A DNA stretch of 64,000 nucleotides, from the sequence record OP380604.1. One strand, 5' to 3'. The notes beneath the pieces were generated by a model. It did not search any database, was not told the origin of the DNA, and saw only the letters and a list, made by a program, of their open reading frames with translations. This document shows, piece by piece, positions 1-51,762 of the stretch. Numbering within the stretch: position 1 is the first letter of the stretch; each line of letters begins with the position of its first letter. Made by a program: the position numbers and the translations under genes.

Positions 1-135
1 CTACAGTGGGCTAGTCCGAACTGTGATGTTACCCGAGATAGTCATATGAAAACTGATCGTGGTAACTGGTATCGAATCGAACTGAATTTTGAACGTGGTG
101 AGATTGAGTTATCACCTACCGTACTACGTTACTAA
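1..135 (+). CDS. 3' end of a hypothetical protein (partial, runs off the window start)
   Basis: Frame 1 is open from base 1 to TAA at 133-135 (LQWASPN...SPTVLRY*). Confidence 0.5.
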   Translation, partial: LQWASPNCDVTRDSHMKTDRGNWYRIELNFERGEIELSPTVLRY

Positions 136-269
136 TCGAAGATTGCGGCGTTAGCCGCTAACTCGTTGAATAGTAAGAAGAAGACAATTTAGATTCTCAT
201 ATAAGATATATAAGAGATTTTATTTTGTCTTTTTGTAACATCTAGCTCGCTACGCTCGCAATCTTCGAT
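135..269. repeat. Dispersed nested-palindrome element, copy A
   Basis: 13-bp terminal inverted repeat ATCGAAGATTGCG (135-147) / CGCAATCTTCGAT (257-269) encloses an AT-rich imperfect hairpin AAGACAA...TTGTCTT. The core is similar to copies at about 23290 and 47950. Confidence 0.85.
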
Positions 270-278
270 GAAAAAAGT

Positions 279-307
279 ATTGACATCTGATTTAAGAAGA
301 GTATTAT
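279..307 (+). promoter_or_regulatory. T4-type early (sigma70) promoter
   Basis: ATTGAC-17 bp-TATTAT, followed by GAGGA and ATG at 333. Confidence 0.7.
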
Positions 308-332
308 GGCGTTATCAACTTGAGGACACACT

Positions 333-506
333 ATGAACTACCTGAAACGTCTTATGAATCGTATGAAGTACAAGCCGATGATCAAAATCAATGCTTATGC
401 TATGCAGATCCATACCGCTTCTGGTGCTTCTGTGTGTACTCCTGACGGTATTGCTATTAAGCAGCGTATCGAACGGCTTAAACGTGAAATGAGAATGAAT
501 AAATGA
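333..506 (+). CDS. Small early hypothetical protein (57 aa, not in ORF track)
   Basis: SD GAGGA, ATG 333, MNYLKRLMNRMKYKPM...EMRMNK*. The stop overlaps the next ATG (ATGA). Confidence 0.65.
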   Translation: MNYLKRLMNRMKYKPMIKINAYAMQIHTASGASVCTPDGIAIKQRIERLKREMRMNK

Positions 507-1060
507 TTTGTAAAATTGTTAATCCAAAACGTCTTAACGTTGGTGATGTTATCGACTTCGGGCGGTATCAACTGCTGACCATCGACAAGATCGAAGGTAA
601 GAAAGTTTACTTGACTGACGGTGAAAGCGGTGAAAAAATAGAAATGGAATTCTATCAACTGAGTTCCAAGTCATATCGTTACACAGGACATAACTCAGAA
701 CGAGGCTACACGGTTTCTGGTAGCGGTATGAACTCTCGCTATGGCATGAGTCTTGGTATGCTGTATGATTACGGCGTAAAGCAGCCAATCGCTGCTGGCG
801 AAGAGATTGATTATTGCGTTGAGTCTACCTATTACAAGGGCACAGTCGTTGCGGTGGGCTCGTTTGCAATCAACAAAGCTCAGATTATTTTCAATCCAAG
901 TCGCGGCGAGAAAAACGCGGTTGTGGTGAAAAACGAAGACGGCAAAGAGCGCGTTATTATCGGAACCGGTCAGACTCTTTACTTTGTAGAGCCCGACGAA
1001 AAGGGTAATATGTTTATCAACAATACTCATATCTGTGTAGTCAATCAATATCGGGGTTAA
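503..1060 (+). CDS. Hypothetical protein (beta-rich)
   Basis: 185-aa ORF translationally coupled within the early operon. Confidence 0.7.
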   Translation: MICKIVNPKRLNVGDVIDFGRYQLLTIDKIEGKKVYLTDGESGEKIEMEFYQLSSKSYRYTGHNSERGYTVSGSGMNSRYGMSLGMLYDYGVKQPIAAGEEIDYCVESTYYKGTVVAVGSFAINKAQIIFNPSRGEKNAVVVKNEDGKERVIIGTGQTLYFVEPDEKGNMFINNTHICVVNQYRG

Positions 1061-15896: not shown

Positions 15897-15904
15897 GCTA
15901 AATA
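15897..15904 (+). promoter_or_regulatory. gp55-type late promoter
   Basis: GCTAAATA right after the terminator; the same 8-mer precedes gene 49 and both long fibre genes. Confidence 0.65.
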
Positions 15905-15927
15905 ACATAAAACATAGGAGATTTAAA

Positions 15928-16215
15928 ATGGCACAGACAATCCCAAACGTGATTGTTGGTAAAGCATGGATTTCTCTGAACGCTGCTACTGGTATTCCTG
16001 TTGGCACTCAGTTTAAAATCCAAAATTTACACCCACGAGTTGCTGGTATTTTGGCAGAGGGTACTAAGCCTGCTAACGGTTCCAGAGACGGAGAAATGAT
16101 TAACGGTAGAGTTTATTTTGGCTCGCAGGTAATCGCTGCCGCTGGTAGTTTAGAAGTATGGATTCGCTCGGAAGATGATGTTTCGAGAATCGAAATTAGC
16201 GTAGCCACGGTTTAA
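15928..16215 (+). CDS. Small putative virion protein (95 aa)
   Basis: SD GGAG and ATG 15928; late promoter upstream; beta-rich. Confidence 0.65.
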   Translation: MAQTIPNVIVGKAWISLNAATGIPVGTQFKIQNLHPRVAGILAEGTKPANGSRDGEMINGRVYFGSQVIAAAGSLEVWIRSEDDVSRIEISVATV

Positions 16216-16226
16216 GGAGATAACAA

Positions 16227-18533
16227 ATGCCATTTATTGTAATGGGAGGTGGTTCTGGCGGATCTGGCGGATCATTGGTAATCCCAAATGATTTGCGATT
16301 CGCTTCGGTTGCTGAACGAGATACATTTTTCACTAATAACGCAAGTCGTTTAGTTGATGATGTTATTGTTCTGGTAACAACAGGACCGGGACAATATCAA
16401 TTGTTCCAATATAAGAAAAATGAAACTGCTTGGAAAGAAATTACTGCCGCTATTGTTGGTGCTAAAGGCGATAAGGGTAAAGACGCATTAAACGTCAAAG
16501 CACAGTATTCGGTTGACGGAACAACTTGGGTGGATGCTGCCACTAATACTACCAAGTATATTAGAACGTCGATTGACGACGGCACAACTTGGACTCCTGC
16601 ATTCAAGATTGTTTCCGATGAAGTAGTGTATCAGTATTCTCCGAACGGAACAGATCAATGGGCAGATAGTTTTGATGTTGCACAGCACAAATATGCCAGA
16701 CTGTCGATTGATGAAGGTAAGACTTGGAACGCTTCATTCAAAATTTCTGCCGATGAAATTGTATATCAATACGGAGAATCTGAAATTGGTCCTTGGAGTC
16801 TTGAGTTCAATAAAGACTTGCGTCCTTGGGGTCGTATTAGTATCGATAGCGGAAAGAATTTCAGCGCTCCTTTTAGATTCGTTGCACAAGACGGATTAAG
16901 CTTTATCGCTCAATATTCGGCGTCTGAGTTGGGTCCTTGGACTTCATTCTTCGTTGACGGTGTTCATGAATATGTTCGTTTCAGTAATGATAATCAGAAT
17001 ACTTGGACACCAGCTCAACGATTCAAAGCGGTTCCGTTTGGTGTAAACCAAGACGATAGAAATATTATTGACTTGGGTGGACACAAGATTATTTCTAATA
17101 ACGAGAATATCGCGTTTAGAAATATTTTTACAGGTGATAACTTCTATCCGGTGTGGCAGGGTATCTCAAACGACGGCTCAGCCATTTATCGTGCCGCTGA
17201 GGTAATGTTTTCGGAGCGAGTAAACAGACAACCGTTTAACGGTGATAAGGGAGCAACGTCTGTTCCGTATAATTTCACACGCGCATATCCAACACGCATG
17301 GCAATTCTCCGAATGGCATTTGTTCCGACGGAAGACTTTGTTGGGGATATTAAGTTCCAGTTGTGGTCTCAGGGTGGACTTGTTCTGATTTATTCACAGA
17401 CAATGAAAAACGCGGAACTCGTAAACGGAAGAGAATTTGTTATTAGCTATCAGGGTAATTTGTTTGTTCAACCCGGAAACATCCTTAACGTTCGAGTCGT
17501 GAAAGCAGACGGTACTCCTGTTCAAGCGTTAGCTGGTTCTACTGTTGCAACTGAGCCATGGCGAGTCGTTGATTATATGCCTATGGAACCAGTTCGTCTT
17601 ATCAACGAGAAAGACGGCAAAGATGTTGCGCGTATGCTTGAGACTTTACAGGGTGCCGAGCGTCTGAGTATTAACTCGTTGAAAGACGTTGATCAAATTA
17701 AAGTTGGATCACTGAGAGGTGATATTGACTTTAACCGAGATCTATCCCAATTTGTTCCGTCTACTAAAAACGATTACTGGAAATCGACTCGCGAAATCAA
17801 TTACGGTGGATTAGCATTCAAAATTGGCGACAAGCTGATTGCGATGCGAAATATTGCCGCAAACGAAACGATTACGACTTTGGTAGATCCAAATACTTTC
17901 TATTTGGAAAGAAACTTGGCGAACGTAGCGAAACCAGCTGAGTTGGGTCTAGTGATGCCTGGAAGAAACACACTCGTTAGCGCAACCGGTGAGCTTTATG
18001 TTCGTCCGGCTACCGCTGAAAACGACGGTGCTGTTAAACTTGGTGTTCCTGGCGGCGCGGCTAAGTTGGGAGAAGACGGTAAAGTTAGCGTGGAACAGCT
18101 TCCACCGATTGATACACTACGCCGTGTTAGTGTGAATGACGAAGCAGCGCGTCTAGCTCTTCCTGTTGCCAATCGCTTTACAATCGCTATCCAGATTGAT
18201 ACACAGGATCAGTGGTATCTTGATGCATTCTTGTTACCTAGTATCAAAGCAAACTGGGTATATGGTGGATCTGTTGCTGCTAACGTTTCGTCGTTCAATA
18301 ACAGAAACGGTAACGTTCTTCCGCAAGCCGGCGACTATACTGCCGATATGGTAGGAGCTCTAGCTAAACCAGCAACGAATGACGGCAAGCGTCGCGTTGT
18401 TGTCGGTGATAAACTCGTTGAAGAAGCAATTAAGCAGGATGAAATTCTGGATACAGCAACAAATATCACGTATGTGTTAAAAATTGAAGCTGGTGTTCCA
18501 TATCTCGATCCAACAAATAGCGAAGATGTTTAA
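16227..18533 (+). CDS. Putative fibre/appendage protein with collagen-like triplets and Asp-box repeats
   Basis: GAKGDKGKD; four SxDxGxTW-like repeats; C-terminal VNDEAARLAL...VSSFNNRNGNV motif typical of phage fibres. Confidence 0.65.
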   Translation: MPFIVMGGGSGGSGGSLVIPNDLRFASVAERDTFFTNNASRLVDDVIVLVTTGPGQYQLFQYKKNETAWKEITAAIVGAKGDKGKDALNVKAQYSVDGTTWVDAATNTTKYIRTSIDDGTTWTPAFKIVSDEVVYQYSPNGTDQWADSFDVAQHKYARLSIDEGKTWNASFKISADEIVYQYGESEIGPWSLEFNKDLRPWGRISIDSGKNFSAPFRFVAQDGLSFIAQYSASELGPWTSFFVDGVHEYVRFSNDNQNTWTPAQRFKAVPFGVNQDDRNIIDLGGHKIISNNENIAFRNIFTGDNFYPVWQGISNDGSAIYRAAEVMFSERVNRQPFNGDKGATSVPYNFTRAYPTRMAILRMAFVPTEDFVGDIKFQLWSQGGLVLIYSQTMKNAELVNGREFVISYQGNLFVQPGNILNVRVVKADGTPVQALAGSTVATEPWRVVDYMPMEPVRLINEKDGKDVARMLETLQGAERLSINSLKDVDQIKVGSLRGDIDFNRDLSQFVPSTKNDYWKSTREINYGGLAFKIGDKLIAMRNIAANETITTLVDPNTFYLERNLANVAKPAELGLVMPGRNTLVSATGELYVRPATAENDGAVKLGVPGGAAKLGEDGKVSVEQLPPIDTLRRVSVNDEAARLALPVANRFTIAIQIDTQDQWYLDAFLLPSIKANWVYGGSVAANVSSFNNRNGNVLPQAGDYTADMVGALAKPATNDGKRRVVVGDKLVEEAIKQDEILDTATNITYVLKIEAGVPYLDPTNSEDV

Positions 18534-18540
18534 TAAATAT

Positions 18541-18569
18541 AGCCACCTTCGGGTGGCTTTTTATAAATA
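18541..18569 (+). promoter_or_regulatory. Terminator plus T4 consensus late promoter
   Basis: AGCCACC-TTCG-GGTGGCTTTT, then TATAAATA at 18562-18569. Confidence 0.8.
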
Positions 18570-18593
18570 AATCAGAATTACCAAGGAGTTCAT

Positions 18594-20471
18594 ATGTCAA
18601 GAATAAATCTGGTAACCCACCCAGAAAAAACTACTGAACCCAAAGTGTGGGTTGACGGTAAGTGGGATAATGTATCGAATACAAAAATCGTTCAAGCGCA
18701 AGCTAACGGAAAAATAAATAAGGATTTATTGCCGGAGGATGTCGGAGGAGTTGTCGCTCCTAGATGGGATCCGGCAGTTATGTATCAAGAAGGGGATTTG
18801 GTTTACCACAACCACAAAGTTTATCGATCTTTTGGACAAAATCAGGGGGGATTTCTCGAAGTAATAGATGACCCAAACACACCAGAAGACGTTAAAGCTA
18901 GAGTTGGGTTCACTCTGGTTTCAGACGATGGAACATCATACGCAACTACGTGGACACAATGGCAACAGTCCGGTAAATTCTTTAAAGAAGGTCAGCTATT
19001 CGAACACTTCGGTGCTTTATATCGAGCAAAACAGGCTGGAATAAATCAAGAAATATCCAATCCTCTGTATTTTGATAAGATATCTGGATATGTTCCTCCT
19101 AGAACATGGAATTCAAACTTTTCGTTTGCACAGGGAGAACTAGCACAATATCAGGGAACGATGGTACAGGCAAACGGAACAATAAACGGAGGAACACAAT
19201 TTAGATGGGGAACATCAGGAACATCTTTTAGGCCACTGTTGAGTTCGAATAACTATCCCTTGCGATGGATTGGCGTTGCAGATTCAACAACAAGTTATTC
19301 CGTTGGCGATGTTGTTGCTCAATCTAACGTCTCGTATATTCTTTATGTGTGTACTTCTCCTGGAACATTCTCATTAGTAAACGGACTTCCTGACTCGGAG
19401 AAATGGGCACCTCTAATTGAGAGTAAGCCTGTCATTGTCCAAGCGAAAGCTCCTCCGGTTCAAGTAATAAACGCCCGCAACTGGGATTTTAATGTAGCGT
19501 ATTCTATTAACGACATTGTGACGTATAACGGAGTTGTTGTTCGTTGTAAAAATCCAGTTGGTCAGAGCGTGCAATTTTCTTATTCTAACTTCGAAGAAGT
19601 TGGTGCCAATGCATTCGTAAAGGCTAAAAACTGGGAAGCAAATAGACCATACGATTTAGGAACAATTTGTTTCCAAAACGGCGAAATGTATATGGCAAAT
19701 AGCAACTTGGCAGCAACCGGTTCATTTAACGTTGGATTTACCGGAGCGACTTGGAAAAGAATAAGTCCCGATCCTGCTCCAATTATTCCAGACTGGACAA
19801 GCACAGTTTTTTATTTCGCAGGATCCACGGTCCGTTATAACGGAGAAACATACCTTGCTAGATCAAATATTTCCTCAGGAACTGCTTGGAACTTTGCAAA
19901 CTGGCAGCGGATTTCGGACACACGAGTATTCGGAGATATGAAACAAGGTTTTATGACTTCGAATCACGACGGCTGGTATTTGTGTAACGGTGCTGCTATT
20001 ACTACTCTACCGACAAACGCTAGAGCGAGAGCCAGTTCGTTAGGATTCACAAGTACATTGCCGGATATGCGGGATCGTGTTCCTGTTGGTGTGGGATCTA
20101 CTCACGCGCTAAGAGTTGCATATGGAAGCAACTTCATTGCACAGAACAACTTGCCTAATGTCACGGTATCTTTCAGCGGAAGCGGTAGCGGCACAACTGG
20201 AGGCGCATCGAGTACAGCGCAAGTTCTAGGCCTTTCTAATAACCCTATTGTTTATTTTACGGATAACGGTGGTAGTTGGAGTGGAACAGGATATCGTGTT
20301 CCTAACTTCTCTAGCTATGCTAACTTCTACAGTTACAGCACAAGTCACACTCATAGCTTTAGTGTGAGTGTTAGCGGATCAACTAGCTCTATTAACGGTG
20401 GCGTTAGTCAACAACGTTTCGAACAACCTGGACTGGGTGTTAACTTCTTCATCTATCTAGGTCTTGATTAA
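18594..20471 (+). CDS. Fibre/adhesin with about 7 CBM5/12-like repeats and a C-terminal tail-collar domain
   Basis: Repeats such as WDFNVAYSINDIVTYNG and WTSTVFYFAGSTVRYNGETY; collar motif GDMKQG...GWYLCNG...LPDMRDRVPVG. Confidence 0.7.
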   Translation: MSRINLVTHPEKTTEPKVWVDGKWDNVSNTKIVQAQANGKINKDLLPEDVGGVVAPRWDPAVMYQEGDLVYHNHKVYRSFGQNQGGFLEVIDDPNTPEDVKARVGFTLVSDDGTSYATTWTQWQQSGKFFKEGQLFEHFGALYRAKQAGINQEISNPLYFDKISGYVPPRTWNSNFSFAQGELAQYQGTMVQANGTINGGTQFRWGTSGTSFRPLLSSNNYPLRWIGVADSTTSYSVGDVVAQSNVSYILYVCTSPGTFSLVNGLPDSEKWAPLIESKPVIVQAKAPPVQVINARNWDFNVAYSINDIVTYNGVVVRCKNPVGQSVQFSYSNFEEVGANAFVKAKNWEANRPYDLGTICFQNGEMYMANSNLAATGSFNVGFTGATWKRISPDPAPIIPDWTSTVFYFAGSTVRYNGETYLARSNISSGTAWNFANWQRISDTRVFGDMKQGFMTSNHDGWYLCNGAAITTLPTNARARASSLGFTSTLPDMRDRVPVGVGSTHALRVAYGSNFIAQNNLPNVTVSFSGSGSGTTGGASSTAQVLGLSNNPIVYFTDNGGSWSGTGYRVPNFSSYANFYSYSTSHTHSFSVSVSGSTSSINGGVSQQRFEQPGLGVNFFIYLGLD

Positions 20472-20475
20472 AATA

Positions 20476-20512
20476 AGGCACCTTCGGGTGCCTTTCTTAT
20501 ATCTTATAAATA
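20476..20512 (+). promoter_or_regulatory. Terminator plus T4 consensus late promoter
   Basis: AGGCACC-TTCG-GGTGCCT, then TATAAATA at 20505-20512. Confidence 0.8.
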
Positions 20513-20536
20513 AAGAAAACACTAAGGAGAATTATA

Positions 20537-22597
20537 ATGTCAAGAATAAATCTTGTCACATATCCTGTAAAAGATAATAATCCAAAAGTATGGCACGACG
20601 GTCAGTGGAAAAACGCTAAAGACGTTGATGTTGTTCTTTTGAATGGCGGCGAATTAGATCCAACTATTCTTCCTAGAGAAGCAAGAGTTGCAAACGCTCC
20701 TACTCATAGTCCAGACTTATCTTGGCACTCAGGAGATGTTGTTTATAGAAATGATAAACTGTATCGTGCAAATAGCGATATTCCGGAGGGAGTTGCGTTT
20801 AAAGAAGGCGACTTAGCACAACAGTGGAAACCAGTTTCAATCACAGATCAGATTCCAAATGTTCCAGAATTCAATGTATATAATCCGGGATTAGATAAGC
20901 AAATCAAAGCGGGAGAGCTATTCTTTGATAACGGTATTCTGTATCGCGCAAAGTTGAACTCTATTGGAGTCCAAGTAAATTCACCAAACTATTTTGATAA
21001 ACTGGGTGGATTTGTAATGCCTCCTGCTTTTACTACAAGCAAAACTCATTTATCCGGTGAGATTGTGAAACTGCATGGGTATTATGTCGCTGCAAATAGC
21101 GATATTCCAGCTGGAACTTCATTTGCATGGGGTTTGCCAACTCAACTCAATACATGGAGACCGGTAATTTATAACGGATTCTTACAATATAACTGGAGAG
21201 GCGTTGTTTCTTCGACATCCACATACGCTTATGGAGATGTTGTGTCCGTCACCGATAGATCTATTGCTCTTTATGTTTGTATTGCTGTGAGTGCAAACGG
21301 ATTTTCCGTAGAAACAACACCGGATTCGTCTTGGACTCTTTTGGTAAATGATACTCCTCTTATTCTGAGTCAGTATTCCAAGAAAACGGACGATGTGGTT
21401 GTAAACGATTGGGCCGTATCTCATTTGTACGCTAAAGGAACAATTGTTAAGTATACCGATGGAAAATATTATTCAGCAAACGCAGTTATACCTCCAAATA
21501 CACCATGGGCTCCTGGATTGTGGACAGAAATAGTTGATACGTCTGGATTCGCAACAAAAACGGAAGTTGAATTGATTTCAGATCAAATGAGTCTAAAACA
21601 GAATATTATTAACGGTGCTGCATCCACTATTACACTCGGCAACTTGGCAACAAACTCTGTTGTAATTACGGACGCTAACGGAAAAATAGCAGCGAATAGT
21701 AACGTGAGTGCAACAGAAGTAAGTTATTTGGACGGAGTTACATCTAATATTCAAACTCAGTTGAACGGAAAACAAAACACTATTAACGGCGCGGCTTCAA
21801 CAATAACCACTGCTAACTTGGCAACAAACTCAGTTGTTATAACTGATGGCAACGGAAAAATTGCGGTGAATAGTAATATTAGCGGAACGGAAGTAAGTTA
21901 TCTGGACGGAGTTACATCTAATATTCAAACTCAGTTGAATAATAAGATGGACAAAACTCACGTTACAATTGGATATGATCTAGTTCAGTCTGCACAACCA
22001 AGAGCGGTGTTTAGGGATAAATTCCTAACTTCCGGTCCATCAAACACAACAGTTTCGTGGCAAAACGTTCCTTGGATTTATGCAAACATAGATCAAGCAG
22101 AAAGAAGTCTACCATACTGGATCCAACAACTTGCTACTTTCTTTAAGAACTTCGAAAACGATAATCAGTTTGATCAGTTGATTGGTGGAATACCAGCTAA
22201 CTTTAGTATTCCTTTTGGATCATGGGGTGTTGCTCCTAGTGGTTCGACCGATATGGACAACGCGATTTTGTCGGCTTCTGGTAACTACGGGGCTGAGGTA
22301 TTTGAGTTTATTGTTGGAAGAAGTCCGTCTGGGAACGAGATATACACGTTCCAATTTACATTTGCGTTACAGACATCTGGACCAAGTGACGCGAGCGGTG
22401 CTATGTATCCGTTCAGAATGATATATCAGACAGGGAGAAACCAATCAACACACAACTGGTCCGGAACCGTAGTCGGTGCTATCGCATCGTCTGTTCCTCG
22501 TTGCACTGCAAGACCTTCCAGCTTTACGACTGGCACATATAACGCATCTTCTTTCCCGTTGATGTATGAGCCAATCACACTAGAGATTAGTAAGTAA
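20537..22597 (+). CDS. Second fibre/adhesin paralog with CBM-like repeats and a variable tip
   Basis: N-terminus MSRINLVT.P...PKVW.DG.W.N shared with 18594-20471; EVSYLDGVTSNIQTQLN fibre repeats. Confidence 0.7.
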   Translation: MSRINLVTYPVKDNNPKVWHDGQWKNAKDVDVVLLNGGELDPTILPREARVANAPTHSPDLSWHSGDVVYRNDKLYRANSDIPEGVAFKEGDLAQQWKPVSITDQIPNVPEFNVYNPGLDKQIKAGELFFDNGILYRAKLNSIGVQVNSPNYFDKLGGFVMPPAFTTSKTHLSGEIVKLHGYYVAANSDIPAGTSFAWGLPTQLNTWRPVIYNGFLQYNWRGVVSSTSTYAYGDVVSVTDRSIALYVCIAVSANGFSVETTPDSSWTLLVNDTPLILSQYSKKTDDVVVNDWAVSHLYAKGTIVKYTDGKYYSANAVIPPNTPWAPGLWTEIVDTSGFATKTEVELISDQMSLKQNIINGAASTITLGNLATNSVVITDANGKIAANSNVSATEVSYLDGVTSNIQTQLNGKQNTINGAASTITTANLATNSVVITDGNGKIAVNSNISGTEVSYLDGVTSNIQTQLNNKMDKTHVTIGYDLVQSAQPRAVFRDKFLTSGPSNTTVSWQNVPWIYANIDQAERSLPYWIQQLATFFKNFENDNQFDQLIGGIPANFSIPFGSWGVAPSGSTDMDNAILSASGNYGAEVFEFIVGRSPSGNEIYTFQFTFALQTSGPSDASGAMYPFRMIYQTGRNQSTHNWSGTVVGAIASSVPRCTARPSSFTTGTYNASSFPLMYEPITLEISK
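21597..21944 (+). repeat. 174-bp (58-aa) tandem duplication within the fibre gene
   Basis: GAAGTAAGTTAT.TGGACGGAGTTACATCTAATATTCAAACTCAGTTGAA starts at 21716 and at 21890. Confidence 0.85.
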
Positions 22598-22598
22598 T

Positions 22599-22622
22599 AA
22601 AGCCACCTTCGGGTGGCTTTTG
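22599..22622 (+). terminator. Terminator (CUUCGG)
   Basis: AAAGCCACC-TTCG-GGTGGCTTTT. Confidence 0.85.
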
Positions 22623-22679
22623 TTTACTATTCAAATAAAGTGTGCCATAATTAGGTTATGAAAAACTAAAAGAGGTATC

Positions 22680-23243
22680 ATGAGAGTAATAATGCTATTA
22701 GGTATTCCTGGCGCAGGAAAAACTACCTATATGTATTCGCTTGTAGATAAATTCAATCCGGATGCAAGAAATAAAATAGATTGTCCTTCTCCAAAAGGAG
22801 CAACGGTTAGTTATACCAAGTTCAACGATAAGATTTGTGCCATAGGAGCATATGATCGAAATAAGAAATGTAGGAGTTCAAATCATACATATCATTGTTT
22901 CGAAACAACTCCTGCCGTGCAATTTTATAGTGCATTGCAATATTCTTTAGAACAACTCGAATCTATGGGATATGAGTATGTTATTTTGGACGGCCATAAG
23001 CCTGTCATAGAGTATAAGCGACTTAAATACGATTTTGTGTTGGTAGAGTTTCCTATCGATGAAGCATTAGCAAGACAGAGATATGAGAATCGGTGCGGAA
23101 AAGATTACGACGCTATGGGAACAAAGTATCAGGAAAAGATCAAGGAAGTTCTTTCTCTTGACAAAGAGCGGTGGACGAAAGAAGAGTTGGAACAATACAT
23201 CGAACAAACTGGATACATCAAAGCTAAGACGCTTGACATTTGA
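22680..23243 (+). CDS. P-loop nucleotide/DNA kinase-like protein
   Basis: LLGIPGAGKTT Walker A at the N-terminus, VILDG Walker B-like, LARQRYENR lid-like motif. Confidence 0.6.
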   Translation: MRVIMLLGIPGAGKTTYMYSLVDKFNPDARNKIDCPSPKGATVSYTKFNDKICAIGAYDRNKKCRSSNHTYHCFETTPAVQFYSALQYSLEQLESMGYEYVILDGHKPVIEYKRLKYDFVLVEFPIDEALARQRYENRCGKDYDAMGTKYQEKIKEVLSLDKERWTKEELEQYIEQTGYIKAKTLDI

Positions 23244-23286
23244 GCCACCTCCGGGTGGCTTTTTCATATGGTAGTGGCTTGTCCAC

Positions 23287-23380
23287 TGCGAAGCTAACTC
23301 ATTGATTACCTTAAGGAAGACAAAATAGATTCTCATTAAAGATCTATAAGAGATTTTGTTTTGTCTCGCTACGCTCGAAG
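23287..23380. repeat. Dispersed nested-palindrome element, copy B (arms degenerate)
   Basis: GCTAACTCATTGATTACCTTAAGGAAGACAAAATAGATTCTCATTAAAG...ATAAGAGATTTTGTTTTGTCTCGCTACGCTCG. Near-identical to the reverse complement of copy C and similar to copy A. Confidence 0.85.
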
Positions 23381-23449
23381 TGCTGCGCACATGTTGACTA
23401 CTCACTGAACTTGATGTATCATGGCTATACTTATTCACGAGGAAATAAT

Positions 23450-40544: not shown

Positions 40545-42386
40545 ATGTCACAAGAGTTTAAAGTTTTATCCGACAAAGAACACTGCCTTATCAATACGGA
40601 CATGTACATCGGGAGTACGAGCCTAGAGGTTCACGATGTTCTTGTAGATGGCAAGTTTGTTCCGATTGGTTATATTCCAGGTCTAGTCAAGATCACGGAT
40701 GAAGTAATCGATAACTGTGTGGATGAAGCAATTCGGACTAACTTCGAACATGCCAATCAAATCGAAGTGTCTATTAAAGACAATCAGGTATCAGTGAAAG
40801 ATAACGGTCGTGGTTTGCCCCAGGGTATGGTAGTCACTCCGGAAGGCGTTGAAGTACCGTTGCCACTTGCGGCTTGGACTCGCGCTCGCGCTGGCTCTAA
40901 CTTCTCCGCAGATCGCAAGACTATCGGTAAAAACGGTGTTGGATCCGCGTTAACTAACTTTTTCTCTGATAGTTTCGTTGGTGAAACCGGTAACGGCACA
41001 AATACCGTAACTGTACGTTGCACAAACAACGCGGATGAAGTAAGTTACACAACTAAAGCGGGTAAATTCAAGGGCACGACTGTAACGTTTGTTCCTGATT
41101 TCACCAGATTTGGTGTGTTCCAGCTTGATGAAGATTTCGAGCAAGTTATTCAGTCCAGACTGTTGACTCTTGCTGTAAACTTCCCGCAGATTACTTTCAA
41201 GTATAACGGCAAGAAAGTTGAAGGTAAGTTCAACAAATTCGCTGCACAATTTGGTGATGTTGTAAGCCACAACGATGAAAACGTTAGCTTGTTCTTTGCG
41301 ACTTCCGAAGAATACAGACAACTGAGCTTTGTTAACGGTGTTCACACAAAGCAGGGTGGTAATCACGTTTATGGCGTGTTGGACTCTCTGAGCGACGAAC
41401 TGATTCCGATGATCAAGCGTCAGCACAAGATCGAAATCAATAAGGCTCGTATCAAAGAATGCTTGCTTATTGGCTTGTTTATTCGTAATCTGGTAGCGCC
41501 GAAGTATGACGGTCAGACAAAAGAGCGACTGAGTTCTCCATGGGCACAGATTCGCGATCATATGAATCTGGATTATAAGGCTCTTGCTCGCAAGATTCTG
41601 AAAACTCCAGAAGTGATTGACCCGATTATTGCGTCTGCGCTGGCAAAGAAAGAAGCGGCAGATAAAGCCGCGGCAACTAAAGCCCAGAAGAAAGCAAAGA
41701 AAGCAAACGTAGCTAAACACGTTGCAGCGGCTGGTCTAGGTAGAGTTAAAACTATGTTGTTCCTTGCAGAAGGTGATTCGGCGATTGGTCCGTTCACTCG
41801 ATTCCGCAACGAAGAAACACAAGGCTCGTATCCCCTGCGTGGTAAGATGCTGAACGTATGGAATTTGCCTGATCATGAAGTGTTGAAAAACAAAGAGATT
41901 GCAGATCTACTTGGTATTCTCAACGTAGAACTCCGTTCGAAAGAAGCGCCCGCATATAGCGAAATTGCTATCATGACAGACGCGGATCAAGACGGTAAGG
42001 GTTCTATCGCTATGTTGGCTATTGCGTTTTTCTACAAGTATTGGCCACATTGGTTTGATCAGGGACGAATTTATATCGTTCGAACTCCTGAGTATATCAG
42101 CACAAACGGCAAAAAGACTGATTGGAGTTATTCTCGCGACGAGTTTAGAGCTAAGAAGTTCGACGGCAAGTGGACGCATCGACACATCAAGGGTCTTGGC
42201 TCGTTGACTGTTGAAGGCGATGATTGCGAATACAAACAATGTATTGAAAATCTCGTGTTGGAACAAGTCGTTATCGATGATCAAACTGCCGAAATGCTGG
42301 AAATGTTGTTCGGTGATGATGAACACAAGCGCAAACAGTGGCTTGGTTTCGATGATGATATCATTATTGAAGAGGAAGAGGGTTGA
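40545..42386 (+). CDS. 39: Type II topoisomerase large subunit (fused gp39+gp60)
   Basis: GHKL motifs EVIDN, DNGRG and GKNGVG plus TOPRIM motifs EGDSA, PLRGK, MTDADQDG and KGLGS in one ORF. Confidence 0.96.
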   Translation: MSQEFKVLSDKEHCLINTDMYIGSTSLEVHDVLVDGKFVPIGYIPGLVKITDEVIDNCVDEAIRTNFEHANQIEVSIKDNQVSVKDNGRGLPQGMVVTPEGVEVPLPLAAWTRARAGSNFSADRKTIGKNGVGSALTNFFSDSFVGETGNGTNTVTVRCTNNADEVSYTTKAGKFKGTTVTFVPDFTRFGVFQLDEDFEQVIQSRLLTLAVNFPQITFKYNGKKVEGKFNKFAAQFGDVVSHNDENVSLFFATSEEYRQLSFVNGVHTKQGGNHVYGVLDSLSDELIPMIKRQHKIEINKARIKECLLIGLFIRNLVAPKYDGQTKERLSSPWAQIRDHMNLDYKALARKILKTPEVIDPIIASALAKKEAADKAAATKAQKKAKKANVAKHVAAAGLGRVKTMLFLAEGDSAIGPFTRFRNEETQGSYPLRGKMLNVWNLPDHEVLKNKEIADLLGILNVELRSKEAPAYSEIAIMTDADQDGKGSIAMLAIAFFYKYWPHWFDQGRIYIVRTPEYISTNGKKTDWSYSRDEFRAKKFDGKWTHRHIKGLGSLTVEGDDCEYKQCIENLVLEQVVIDDQTAEMLEMLFGDDEHKRKQWLGFDDDIIIEEEEG

Positions 42387-42438
42387 CACCCTCTTTTTCA
42401 AAGTGTAGAATCATTCCATGCTTTGAAAAGGAGAGCGT

Positions 42439-47871: not shown

Positions 47872-47933
47872 TTGGAGCGATTCTGTATGATATAGCAATA
47901 CAATGTTATAGCTATCATATGGGATCGCTCCAA
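47872..47933 (+). other. Long imperfect hairpin (candidate structured RNA)
   Basis: TTGGAGCGAT / ATCGCTCCAA outer stem continued by G-U pairs and TATGAT / ATCATA. Confidence 0.55.
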
Positions 47934-47951: not shown

Positions 47952-48087
47952 GTCGAAGACTGCGGCATAGCCGCTAGTTAATTGAGAAAGACAAAATAAA
48001 ATCTCTTATAATACTTTAATGAGAATCTATTTTGTCTTCCTTAAGGTAATCAATAAGTTAGCTCACTACGTTCGCAATCTTGCGATC
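47952..48087. repeat. Dispersed nested-palindrome element, copy C (inverted)
   Basis: Arms GTCGAAGACTGCG / CGCAATCTTGCGAT; core AAGACAAAATA...TATTTTGTCTT; the reverse complement matches copy B. Confidence 0.85.
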
Positions 48088-48191
48088 ATCGATTTCTGGA
48101 GCCGATTAGTTAATAGTCAATTCGATTGCCTATTGACACTATCATTCAACTATGTAATACTGGTACCACTTCTTAACAAAAGGTAAATGAA

Positions 48192-51279: not shown

Positions 51280-51472
51280 CGTAAAAACTACGGTTGATAT
51301 TAACCTAGAAGATTATCAAATGACTGAGGTAGAGGTAACACTTTATCGTGATCACAAGAATGTAGTAACATCAAGCCTAGTCGTGCTAAATGATGGACAC
51401 CAAATTAGATTTAAGGGTAATGCGCTTTTCAACGCCGATATTACCTTGCGCGAAGTGGGTTATGAAGTATGA
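51212..51472 (+). CDS. Hypothetical protein
   Basis: Couples to asiA by ATGA; exact start uncertain. Confidence 0.5.
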   Translation: MPQMIIVTGAVVQGLAPNWEDSDVKTTVDINLEDYQMTEVEVTLYRDHKNVVTSSLVVLNDGHQIRFKGNALFNADITLREVGYEV

Positions 51473-51762
51473 ATGCCAAATTAGAACTAATTAAGGATAT
51501 CGTTGCTACCGTTTCTCTTATCATCAAACTTGAGGTAGACGGTGAAATCCTTGACACACAACAAAATCTGATCGACTTTTTGAATGAAGCTGGGTTCCGC
51601 ACTGTTCGAGGACTAGAATTCACCAAAATGAGTTTCAGACAGATGATAGGTAGACTCACACCGGAAGAACGTATGGAAGTTCTTTCTGAGTTCTCGGCAC
51701 AAGAGCATTATGAAATGCTGAACGCAATGCTGGGTCCTCGCAGTGACGTAGACTATGCATAA
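51469..51762 (+). CDS. asiA: Anti-sigma70 factor AsiA
   Basis: DIVATVSLIIK...N.IDFLNE.G...G...T..SFR.....LT.EE aligns with T4 AsiA; last early gene before the convergent late block, as in T4. Confidence 0.85.
   Translation: MNAKLELIKDIVATVSLIIKLEVDGEILDTQQNLIDFLNEAGFRTVRGLEFTKMSFRQMIGRLTPEERMEVLSEFSAQEHYEMLNAMLGPRSDVDYA

Follow-up and report, generated by a model that had tools for sequence, protein, structure and literature searches.

Composite palindromes at seven fixed intergenic sites in the genomes of Aeh1-like Aeromonas phages

Dispersed repeats and origins in other genomes

The palindromic repeat families of bacteria occur in tens to hundreds of copies at variable sites, and REPs have a cognate RAYT transposase; BIME-1 (or RIP) consists of two inverted REPs around an IHF site, ERIC (IRU) sequences are imperfect palindromes of about 127 bp, and Correia elements and REPINs are further families of this kind. 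In eukaryotic viruses, the baculovirus homologous regions (hrs) and the palindromic herpesvirus origins oriL and oriS have origin or enhancer roles and binding proteins that are experimentally established. REPs themselves are GC-rich imperfect palindromes, 20-40 bp long, that come in inverted pairs; their tag at one end, GTAG or CGTC, is described in PMC3733652. The PeSL of T4-type phages is a small cassette in which a sigma70 promoter is combined with an AT-rich UP region and with a short stem-loop, often rich in G and C runs, that serves as a terminator; PeSLs are abundant in hyperplastic regions, where they flank ORFans that come and go, and are crossover points in the exchange of modules (PMC2839356, PMC4122927). 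T4 uses at least five to seven dispersed origins, which are without a common motif and are not palindromic repeats; oriF and oriG are composed of a promoter that reads into a downstream DNA-unwinding element, and oriE of iterons (PMC3016281).

The DNA analysed here, called the window below, is a stretch of 64,000 nt (bases 1-64000, plus strand) of Aeromonas phage avDM12-TAAL (OP380604.1), a T4-type phage of the family Straboviridae, genus Chrysonvirus. Its record is 231 kb long and the first 461 nt are repeated near the record end, so the true genome is about 230.7 kb. A preliminary description, made from the letters of the window, had proposed a nested palindromic element in three copies, with a mobile element, a recombination hot-spot, a replication origin or protein-loading site, and a structured RNA as its possible identities. 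All three copies (A, B and C) are present where it placed them; a 20-nt core probe (no more than 3 mismatches) matches only these loci, on both strands at A and C because the core is palindromic, and has five matches, compared with none in 100 shuffles. A profile search of the whole avDM12 genome found eight copies, all intergenic, at seven sites, and the window thus contains three of the eight members of the set (Table 1).

Table 1. Palindrome copies and adjoining features in the window, followed by the copies and sites of the avDM12 genome
Feature	Position	Strand	Remarks
Copy A, whole composite palindrome	135..269	+	phiAS5-type variant; DNA fold z -5.5
Copy A, left arm: outer inverted repeat and GC mini-hairpin (GCGGC..GCCGC)	135..156	+	
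Copy A, one-sided box GCTAAC-N3-TTGA	157..171	+	nearly invariant in 38 copies from five phages
Copy A, core hairpin, AT-rich, about 50 nt, with conserved apical sequence	181..231	+	
Copy A, right arm, pairs with left arm; GCTCGC-TAC-GCTCGC direct repeat	242..269	+	
Early (sigma70-type) promoter of ORFs downstream of A	280..307	+	outside the repeat unit; 11/12 matches
Canonical intrinsic terminator of upstream gene	23242..23268	+	abuts copy B
Copy B, full core and vestigial arms (mini-hairpins GTGGC..CCAC, GTGC..GCAC)	23270..23392	+	
Copy B, core hairpin	23317..23366	+	
Early promoter of gene 47 (exonuclease subunit)	23394..23422	+	1 nt past copy B; 10/12 matches
Separate palindrome of 62 bp between upstream ORF and copy C	47872..47933	.	
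Copy C, long-arm type	47952..48087	-	core antisense to flanking genes; z -4.2/-4.5
Copy C, core hairpin	47988..48038	-	
Copy C, left-flank motif (..TAATC-N4-TCCAGAAA on - strand)	48088..48119	-	present with most copies
Early promoter of ndd-like gene	48133..48161	+	directed away from copy C; 10/12 matches
Genome copy A	0.2 kb	+	site A, upstream of ORF cluster preceding gene 49
Genome copy B	23.3 kb	+	site B, between a terminator and gene 47
Genome copy C	48.0 kb	-	site C, between nudE plus a small ORF and the ndd-like gene, downstream of rIIA-rIIB
Genome copy D	92.0 kb	-	site D, between pseT.2 and vs.1
Genome copy E	129.4 kb	-	site E, between reverse-oriented ORF after gene 14 and gene 15
Genome copies F1, F2 (tandem)	158.0, 158.2 kb	+	site F, between genes 54 and 26
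Genome copy G	188.0 kb	+	site G, between ADP-ribosylglycohydrolase gene and 1200-aa ORF

Anatomy, neighbourhood and distribution of the copies

Each copy is an AT-centred composite palindrome of 130-190 bp with a near-invariant, very AT-rich core of about 75 bp. Read in the core+ orientation, most copies begin with a left-flank motif ending in TCCAGAAA, followed by a GC-rich left arm of one of three types (two of them with a 5-bp mini-hairpin), the nearly invariant one-sided box, about 12 AT-rich bases, a hairpin of about 50 nt with a stem of roughly 12+3 consensus pairs, a short T-run and, separated from it by 0-60 nt of spacer, the right arm, which is paired with the left one. The hairpin apex, CATTAAAG-NNN-TATAAG, is invariant in 38 copies except for its central triplet. 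Arm types are combined differently from copy to copy, and outer inverted arms are present in A, C, D, F1 and F2. The preliminary description was correct in assigning such arms to A and C and in finding them reduced to vestiges in B, and also in calling the B and C cores near-identical (about 5 of 73 positions differ, three of them in the apical triplet). Compared with C, D and F, copy A has its two arm types exchanged around the core, as if the core had been flipped. Folded as single-stranded DNA, A and C far surpass shuffled sequences (z from -4.2 to -5.5, with none of 200 shuffles as good), which B, when cut at the limits that the preliminary description gave it, does not (z about -1).

At B and C a separate hairpin follows the stop codon of the upstream gene, so the element fills the spacer that precedes the next promoter. 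The 62-bp palindrome next to C is probably the terminator of its upstream ORF and lies outside the repeat family, and short GC-rich terminators of the ordinary kind are found at other gene boundaries in the window. A terminator scan finds none in A and C, and at B only the separate upstream one, so the element itself is not a standard intrinsic terminator; weaker terminator-like features are present on both of its strands. A sigma70-like promoter follows each of the three window copies, as first described, and it is only the position of such promoter-like matches that is consistent, their number per region not being above chance. The right arm of sense copies ends 0-12 nt ahead of the next promoter, which is of the early type at A, B and F2 and is the late motif CTAAATA, the late-promoter consensus of this clade (PMC1524935), at E (gene 15) and G; antisense copies have the promoter just past the left motif. 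The core of copy B is fully conserved, although this copy could not accommodate its own promoter. Two promoter candidates within the element were discarded: one inside the core, TTGATT-18-TAGATT, has only 8 of 12 matches and its last T is lost in PX29, and the left-flank motif is neither sigma70-like nor a CTAAATA late motif, having a -10-like TAnnnT in about half of the motif-bearing copies without a proper -35. The proteins encoded next to the copies (Pfam, PHROG and PDB searches) include a NUDIX hydrolase, an Ndd-like protein, a spanin, a baseplate protein, an ADP-ribosylglycohydrolase and a weakly endonuclease-like ORF. None of these has a clear link to the element, and no transposase or clear DNA-binding match was found among them. 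A tRNA/tmRNA scan of the window found none.

BLAST searches found the palindrome family in 13 phage records (about ten phages), all of Aeh1-like Aeromonas phages. In IMG/VR it is present only in Ah1, Aeh1 and phiAS5, and a looser core pattern there adds one Aeh1 copy and six chance matches in unrelated contigs. The core pattern has no matches in 185,579 bacterial and archaeal species genomes and none in JGI metagenomes, and the arm pattern, in which the short-type arm was not included, has 13 isolated chance matches in bacterial genomes, scattered over unrelated bacteria and none in Aeromonas; a mimic of a host REP-type repeat or CRISPR repeat was rejected on these grounds. Rfam gives no matches in the window at the gathering threshold, and in E-value mode, at two loci, only generic hairpin matches far below threshold. 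An earlier description of these Aeromonas phage repeats was not found in a literature search, and the family is a real set of cis-elements that is specific to Aeh1-like phages and apparently undescribed so far. We note that the palindromes break assemblies (one record begins within a copy, and several copies in that record are scarred) and that they draw spurious ORF calls. For a site-by-site comparison 38 copies were compiled from five phages of three genera: avDM12 and phiAS5 (Chrysonvirus), Aeh1 (Cinqassovirus) with its close relative Ah1, and PX29 (Angelvirus); PX29 was used in place of AsFcp_1 as the Angelvirus representative because the AsFcp_1 copies have poly-A/T scars that resemble assembly errors.

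Like PeSLs, the palindromes are repeated intergenic motifs of T4-type phages that include a stem-loop and are found beside early promoters and, at A and B, at mosaic junctions. They are nevertheless distinct from PeSLs, as the preliminary description had held, since the homologous unit does not include the promoter hexamers, which cannot be aligned from one copy to another, and two copies, E and G, abut the CTAAATA late promoter. The architecture is also different, a composite palindrome of 130-190 bp with a conserved AT-rich core and a 50-nt AT-rich hairpin rather than a short stem-loop with G/C runs, as is the distribution, which is limited to 7-8 copies at seven fixed, syntenic sites in three genera, including late-gene regions (gp14/gp15 and gp54/gp26). 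The catalogued identities that the preliminary description had allowed for, a PeSL and a standard terminator, are both set aside. With BIMEs, ERIC sequences, Correia elements and REPINs the palindromes share a size of 100-180 bp, imperfect symmetry, intergenic location in both orientations, and an AT-rich centre that carries an IHF-like consensus and is enclosed by GC-rich hairpin arms; they differ in having only 7-8 copies at fixed sites of a virulent phage, no bacterial relatives and a much longer conserved core. The arms carry 5-bp GC mini-hairpins, and GTAG sits in the loop and not at the 5' end. The outer arms are terminal inverted repeats, which are a trait of MITEs, and a MITE-like mobile element had been suggested. 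That identity was rejected, since the same seven sites are filled in five phages of three genera, copy number is steady, no direct repeat marks a target-site duplication at the arm ends (by eye on the aligned flanks, base by base at C and D), and no transposase or integrase is annotated anywhere in the avDM12 record or was found among the flanking proteins searched, which extends to the whole record an absence already remarked on for the window.

Synteny, conservation and covariation

All seven sites are filled in all five phages examined, with 7-8 copies per genome; the comparison with relatives that had been proposed as a check thus gave a stable copy number, no empty sites and no target duplications. 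The sole difference in occupancy is at site F, which has a tandem pair in three phages and a single copy in phiAS5 and PX29. At sites A and C the phages differ in which way the element lies with respect to the genes, and at C the conserved left-flank motif turns together with the inverted element, so the functional unit of C extends to about position 48119. The filling of the same seven sites across phages gives the copies the appearance of fixed genome signals, not of jumping elements. Gaps between sites are 23-44 kb on the 230.7 kb circle, and the fairly regular spacing seen in the window holds for all seven sites, which are more even than expected by chance (P about 7e-4; for a minimum gap at least as large P = 7.5e-4, and for a standard deviation at most as large P = 6.6e-4, both under a uniform null not restricted to intergenic gaps). 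When the 80-bp regions of the genome are ranked by AT content, seven of the eight avDM12 cores come within the top 19 (GC percentile 0.01-0.11).

At sites B, C, E and G the avDM12 and Aeh1 cores share 95-99% identity; the adjoining 60 bp on each side usually reach 93-100% (one side of G is 60%), and the far flanks 81-91%. The figures at D and F are lower, that of F being mis-anchored on the tandem pair. Copies within one genome resemble each other. The PX29 core paralogues are 86% identical among themselves and 76% identical to the avDM12 copy at the same site, and the nearest neighbour is a copy from the same genome for seven of seven PX29 copies and four of seven phiAS5 copies. Such co-variation of all copies within a genome is what would be expected if one trans-acting factor reads the sites.

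Folding and covariation had been suggested as a further check, and the core stem proves to be maintained by compensatory change: 94% of its cells are paired, compared with 41-54% when the partners are slid, and the observed covariation was reached by none of 500 shuffles, although it represents only about four independent events. Three stem pairs are altered on both sides in the PX29 lineage (C-G to G-C, A-T to G-C and C-G to T-A) and one in copy B of phiAS5; one stem pair is an uncompensated C.C in three phiAS5 copies and T.C in a fourth. On the core+ strand G.T cells (about 7-8 events) outnumber A.C cells (1-3 events) among the non-Watson-Crick positions of the stem. Folding with RNA parameters prefers the core+ strand in all eight avDM12 copies, and the energies of the two strands are about equal with DNA parameters.

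The recombination hot-spot of the preliminary description stands in part. PhiAS5-like sequence (about 82-86% identity) makes up copy A and the ORF upstream of it; Ah1, Aeh1 and PX29 become homologous only from 315-333 onwards, past copy A, and the genes downstream are Ah1-like. Homology between avDM12 and phiAS5 begins exactly at B, following a block without counterpart, and in PX29 the interval from gene 55 to gene 47 is much shorter. The elements A and B, being at breaks in homology, thus coincide with some of the mosaic junctions, and the shuffled arms and the inversions at A and C fit such a role; copies D, E and G, on the other hand, are spanned by uninterrupted homology.

Possible roles of the palindromes

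The reading that we favour, with a probability of roughly one in three (0.35), is that the copies are a fixed set of seven cis-acting DNA sites that act as origin-like or recombination-initiation sites. A role at the level of DNA and on the scale of the genome is favoured, over local punctuation of RNA or selfish spread, by the fixed number of sites, their even spacing and the extremely AT-rich core clamped by GC-rich arms. The conserved unpaired and one-sided positions, the changes shared by the copies of one genome, the indifference to orientation and the placement of the element, at B and C, in the spacer between upstream hairpin and promoter point in the same direction. The origin or protein-loading site named in the preliminary description is consistent with the even spacing, the AT-rich cores and the conserved unpaired positions, and is the best supported of the suggestions made there. 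We propose more tentatively that the sites are sequence-defined replication origins or programmed recombination-initiation sites that are read by a clade-specific factor co-evolving with the core.

Each site has a core of about 75 bp, AT-rich, imperfect in its palindromic symmetry and easily melted, that is clamped between GC-rich inverted arms and has beside it a promoter directed away from the element. We infer that negative supercoiling behind this promoter could open or extrude the core, that a clade-specific factor would then recognise the invariant apical and one-sided box sequences, and that the opened or hairpinned DNA would admit the helicase-loading and recombination machinery of the phage. 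Such sites would be similar to the T4 origins in being several and dispersed and in having promoters near an unwinding-prone segment, the GC percentile of the cores among all 80-bp regions of the genome being that expected of an unwinding element of the oriF/oriG kind. They differ from the T4 origins in their shared palindromic motif, in the clear promoters that read away from them and in their positions, which have no correspondence to the T4 origin landmarks soc, rI.-1 and repEA. The likeness to the hrs, oriL and oriS is in the several copies scattered over a large viral dsDNA genome at intergenic positions that are conserved, the imperfect palindromes with AT-rich centres, the adjacent promoters, the greater similarity of copies within than between genomes and the association with rearrangement. 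There is no sequence relationship, and this functional resemblance to baculovirus homologous regions or palindromic herpesvirus origins would be an analogy of possible working and not membership.

Some observations run against the origin model. The clear promoters point away from the element and a convincing one that reads into it was not found, the G.T-biased stem and the strand preference under RNA parameters hint at a role in RNA or single strands, and gene conversion alone can yield the homogenisation of copies. Nor would a rigid arrangement of protein on DNA, or a full-length cruciform, be expected to tolerate the insertions of 0-60 nt that occur between core and right arm.

The main rival reading, possible but also tentative, is that the element works as punctuation in RNA: the transcribed tail of the upstream operon would form a large hairpin that terminates transcription bidirectionally, is cut by an RNase specific for double strands and/or protects the upstream mRNA, the element then being a conserved and oversized counterpart of a REP/BIME or of a PeSL's stem-loop half. 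The copies whose flanks were examined are all between the 3' end of one gene and the next promoter, their hairpin is kept by compensatory change, 3-5 T residues follow it on the core+ strand, and on the opposite strand the short-type arm gives a GC hairpin followed by TTTCTGG. The G.U-type asymmetry, the better RNA folding of one strand in all eight copies and the tolerance of inversion and of spacer insertions agree with this reading. The structured-RNA features also fit palindromic DNA sites, which show compensatory change alike, and a role in RNA leaves several facts less well accommodated: the terminator scan is negative for A and C, upstream hairpins are already in place (the canonical terminator at B and the terminator-like palindrome at C), most other gene boundaries are served by ordinary short terminators, the element is at only seven of many operon boundaries and evenly spaced, and its loop and one-sided box are invariant across three genera although a hairpin function would not need them. 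Small RNA genes in multiple copies, with the left-flank motif as their promoter, would give the strand asymmetry in favour of the core+ strand a different meaning. The RNA would have a 5' GC hairpin, a single-stranded "seed" (GCUAACUYAUUGAUU) and an AU-rich hairpin with a U-run as terminator, a layout resembling that of sRNAs, and the left motif does move with the element on inversion. That motif is, however, missing from all B copies and from A of avDM12 and phiAS5, in which the cores are conserved, and it is not a recognisable promoter of either the sigma70 or the CTAAATA late type; the U-run is missing in B copies, conservation continues past the putative terminator into a right arm that is paired with the left one, and there is no Rfam match, so that small RNAs are very improbable.

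Two other explanations, like the one we favour, place the function, or the lack of one, in the DNA. The core could be bound by a host nucleoid protein or a clade-specific phage factor at sites that organise genome domains or activate the adjacent promoters, with no origin function. The IHF-like consensus within the one-sided box suggests this, as do the conserved unpaired positions, the homogenisation of copies within genomes and the proximity to both early (A, B, F2) and CTAAATA late (E, G) promoters; the reverse complement of GCTAACTYATTGATT agrees by eye with WATCAANNNNTTR, and the phages have AsiA but no known MotA partner or middle-promoter motif. We consider such an architectural or enhancer site rather unlikely, as copy A of avDM12 and several PX29 copies lack an intact IHF-like match, the promoters of antisense copies are on the opposite side at a different distance, and no candidate binding protein was found, the neighbouring proteins having no clear DNA-binding matches. 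Less likely again is a selfish or neutral palindromic repeat, an ancient and immobile MITE-like element whose copies are kept alike by gene conversion and which is an incidental hot-spot for module shuffling. Its inverted arms, the concerted evolution, the modular arm types common to several copies, the tandem duplication at site F in three phages and the changes of relationship at A (phiAS5-like upstream, Ah1-like downstream) and exactly at B (after the non-homologous block) would all be explained in this way. A repeat of this sort would not be expected to lack empty sites in the five phages compared, target duplications, a transposase and relatives in hosts or metagenomes, to stay at 7-8 copies, to be evenly spaced, or to be better conserved, in its core and near flanks, than the coding DNA next to it (avDM12 compared with Aeh1); useless dispersed repeats would moreover be a liability in a hyper-recombinogenic genome and should be lost.

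The reading of the palindromes as origin-like or recombination-initiation sites bears on a process that is largely obscure in relatives of T4, the start of replication. Origins of such relatives cannot be found by sequence because T4's own origins share no motif (PMC3016281), and the palindrome family supplies seven candidate sites that are directly testable. Should the palindromes instead turn out to punctuate RNA or to be architectural, they would remain an unusually clear example of a set of cis-elements evolving in concert in a virulent phage. If they are origins or starters of recombination, they would be the first sequence signature of such sites in T4-type phages; the T4 superfamily would have its first multi-origin system based on a motif common to the origins, and viruses of prokaryotes a counterpart of the baculovirus homologous regions.

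Mosaic sequence around copies A and B

The window as a whole is mosaic, and its first segment, which carries copy A, is phiAS5-like (~82%) whereas positions 523–2176 are Ah1-like (88% identity) and have no counterpart in phiAS5. The first 461 nt of the window are repeated exactly near the end of the record, at OP380604.1 230717–231177 (33717–34177 of L005, an avDM12 sub-locus with its own numbering), where 13 additional bases follow. Most likely the assembly of a circularly permuted genome overlaps itself here, and for that reason copy A is counted twice in whole-genome searches. Copy B lies at the boundary of a variable region, a block of large ORFs that also includes a PHROG "clamp loader"-family ORF; the last ~6 kb ahead of copy B showed no DNA-level match to phiAS5, and the interval between genes 55 and 47 of PX29 contains only a-gt.4 and a-gt.5.

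Coordinates of features in and around the elements (L-numbers are sub-loci with their own numbering)
Feature	Position	Remarks
phiAS5-like part	window 1–522	upstream ORF end, copy A, promoter, first ORF, second ORF start
Large-ORF block	window ~15900–23243	between gene 55 and copy B; ORFs of 768, 625 and 686 aa
53-bp near-perfect palindrome	window 42386–42438	26-nt arms, 1 nt apart
62-bp palindrome	window 47872–47933	21-nt arms, 86% complementary
Small ORFs overlapping elements	window 48019–48186; Aeh1 L046:550–654 (Aeh1hmmORF04c); phiAS5 134387–134515	
asiA homologue	window 51469–51762	
201-aa ORF	avDM12 129467–130072 (L003:30467–31072)	reverse orientation; inserted between genes 14 and 15
Scarred AsFcp_1 copies (examples)	L033:34920–35130; L035:5215–5420; L035:34565–34760	

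Neighbouring palindromes and the ORF beside copy E

Two other palindromes in the window are not members of the family. The 62-bp palindrome, between the stop codon of an upstream small ORF and copy C, is a separate structure that is kept in Ah1 and Aeh1 and probably serves as the upstream terminator; the 53-bp palindrome, directly 3' of the topoisomerase large-subunit gene, is unrelated to the repeats. The 201-aa ORF beside copy E has conserved counterparts in both phiAS5 and PX29. It shows weak similarity to phage endonuclease/HNH families and a sub-threshold CapR-domain match, and may encode a degenerate homing-endonuclease-like DNA-binding protein.

Elements in assemblies and annotation

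In the "unverified" AsFcp_1 record (MN871440.1) several copies have poly-A or poly-T runs in place of their cores, and the first base of the record falls inside copy A; these features probably reflect sequencing or assembly failure at the hairpins rather than true deletions. The small ORFs that overlap elements, a mechanical ORF call in the window and annotated "hypothetical proteins" in Aeh1 and phiAS5, almost certainly arise from false ORF calling over the repeat.

AsiA and middle promoters

An asiA homologue is also present in the window. Aeh1-type phages have AsiA, lack a MotA homologue and have no recognised middle-promoter motif (PMC1524935), so their AsiA may have another, as yet unrecognised, partner and binding site.
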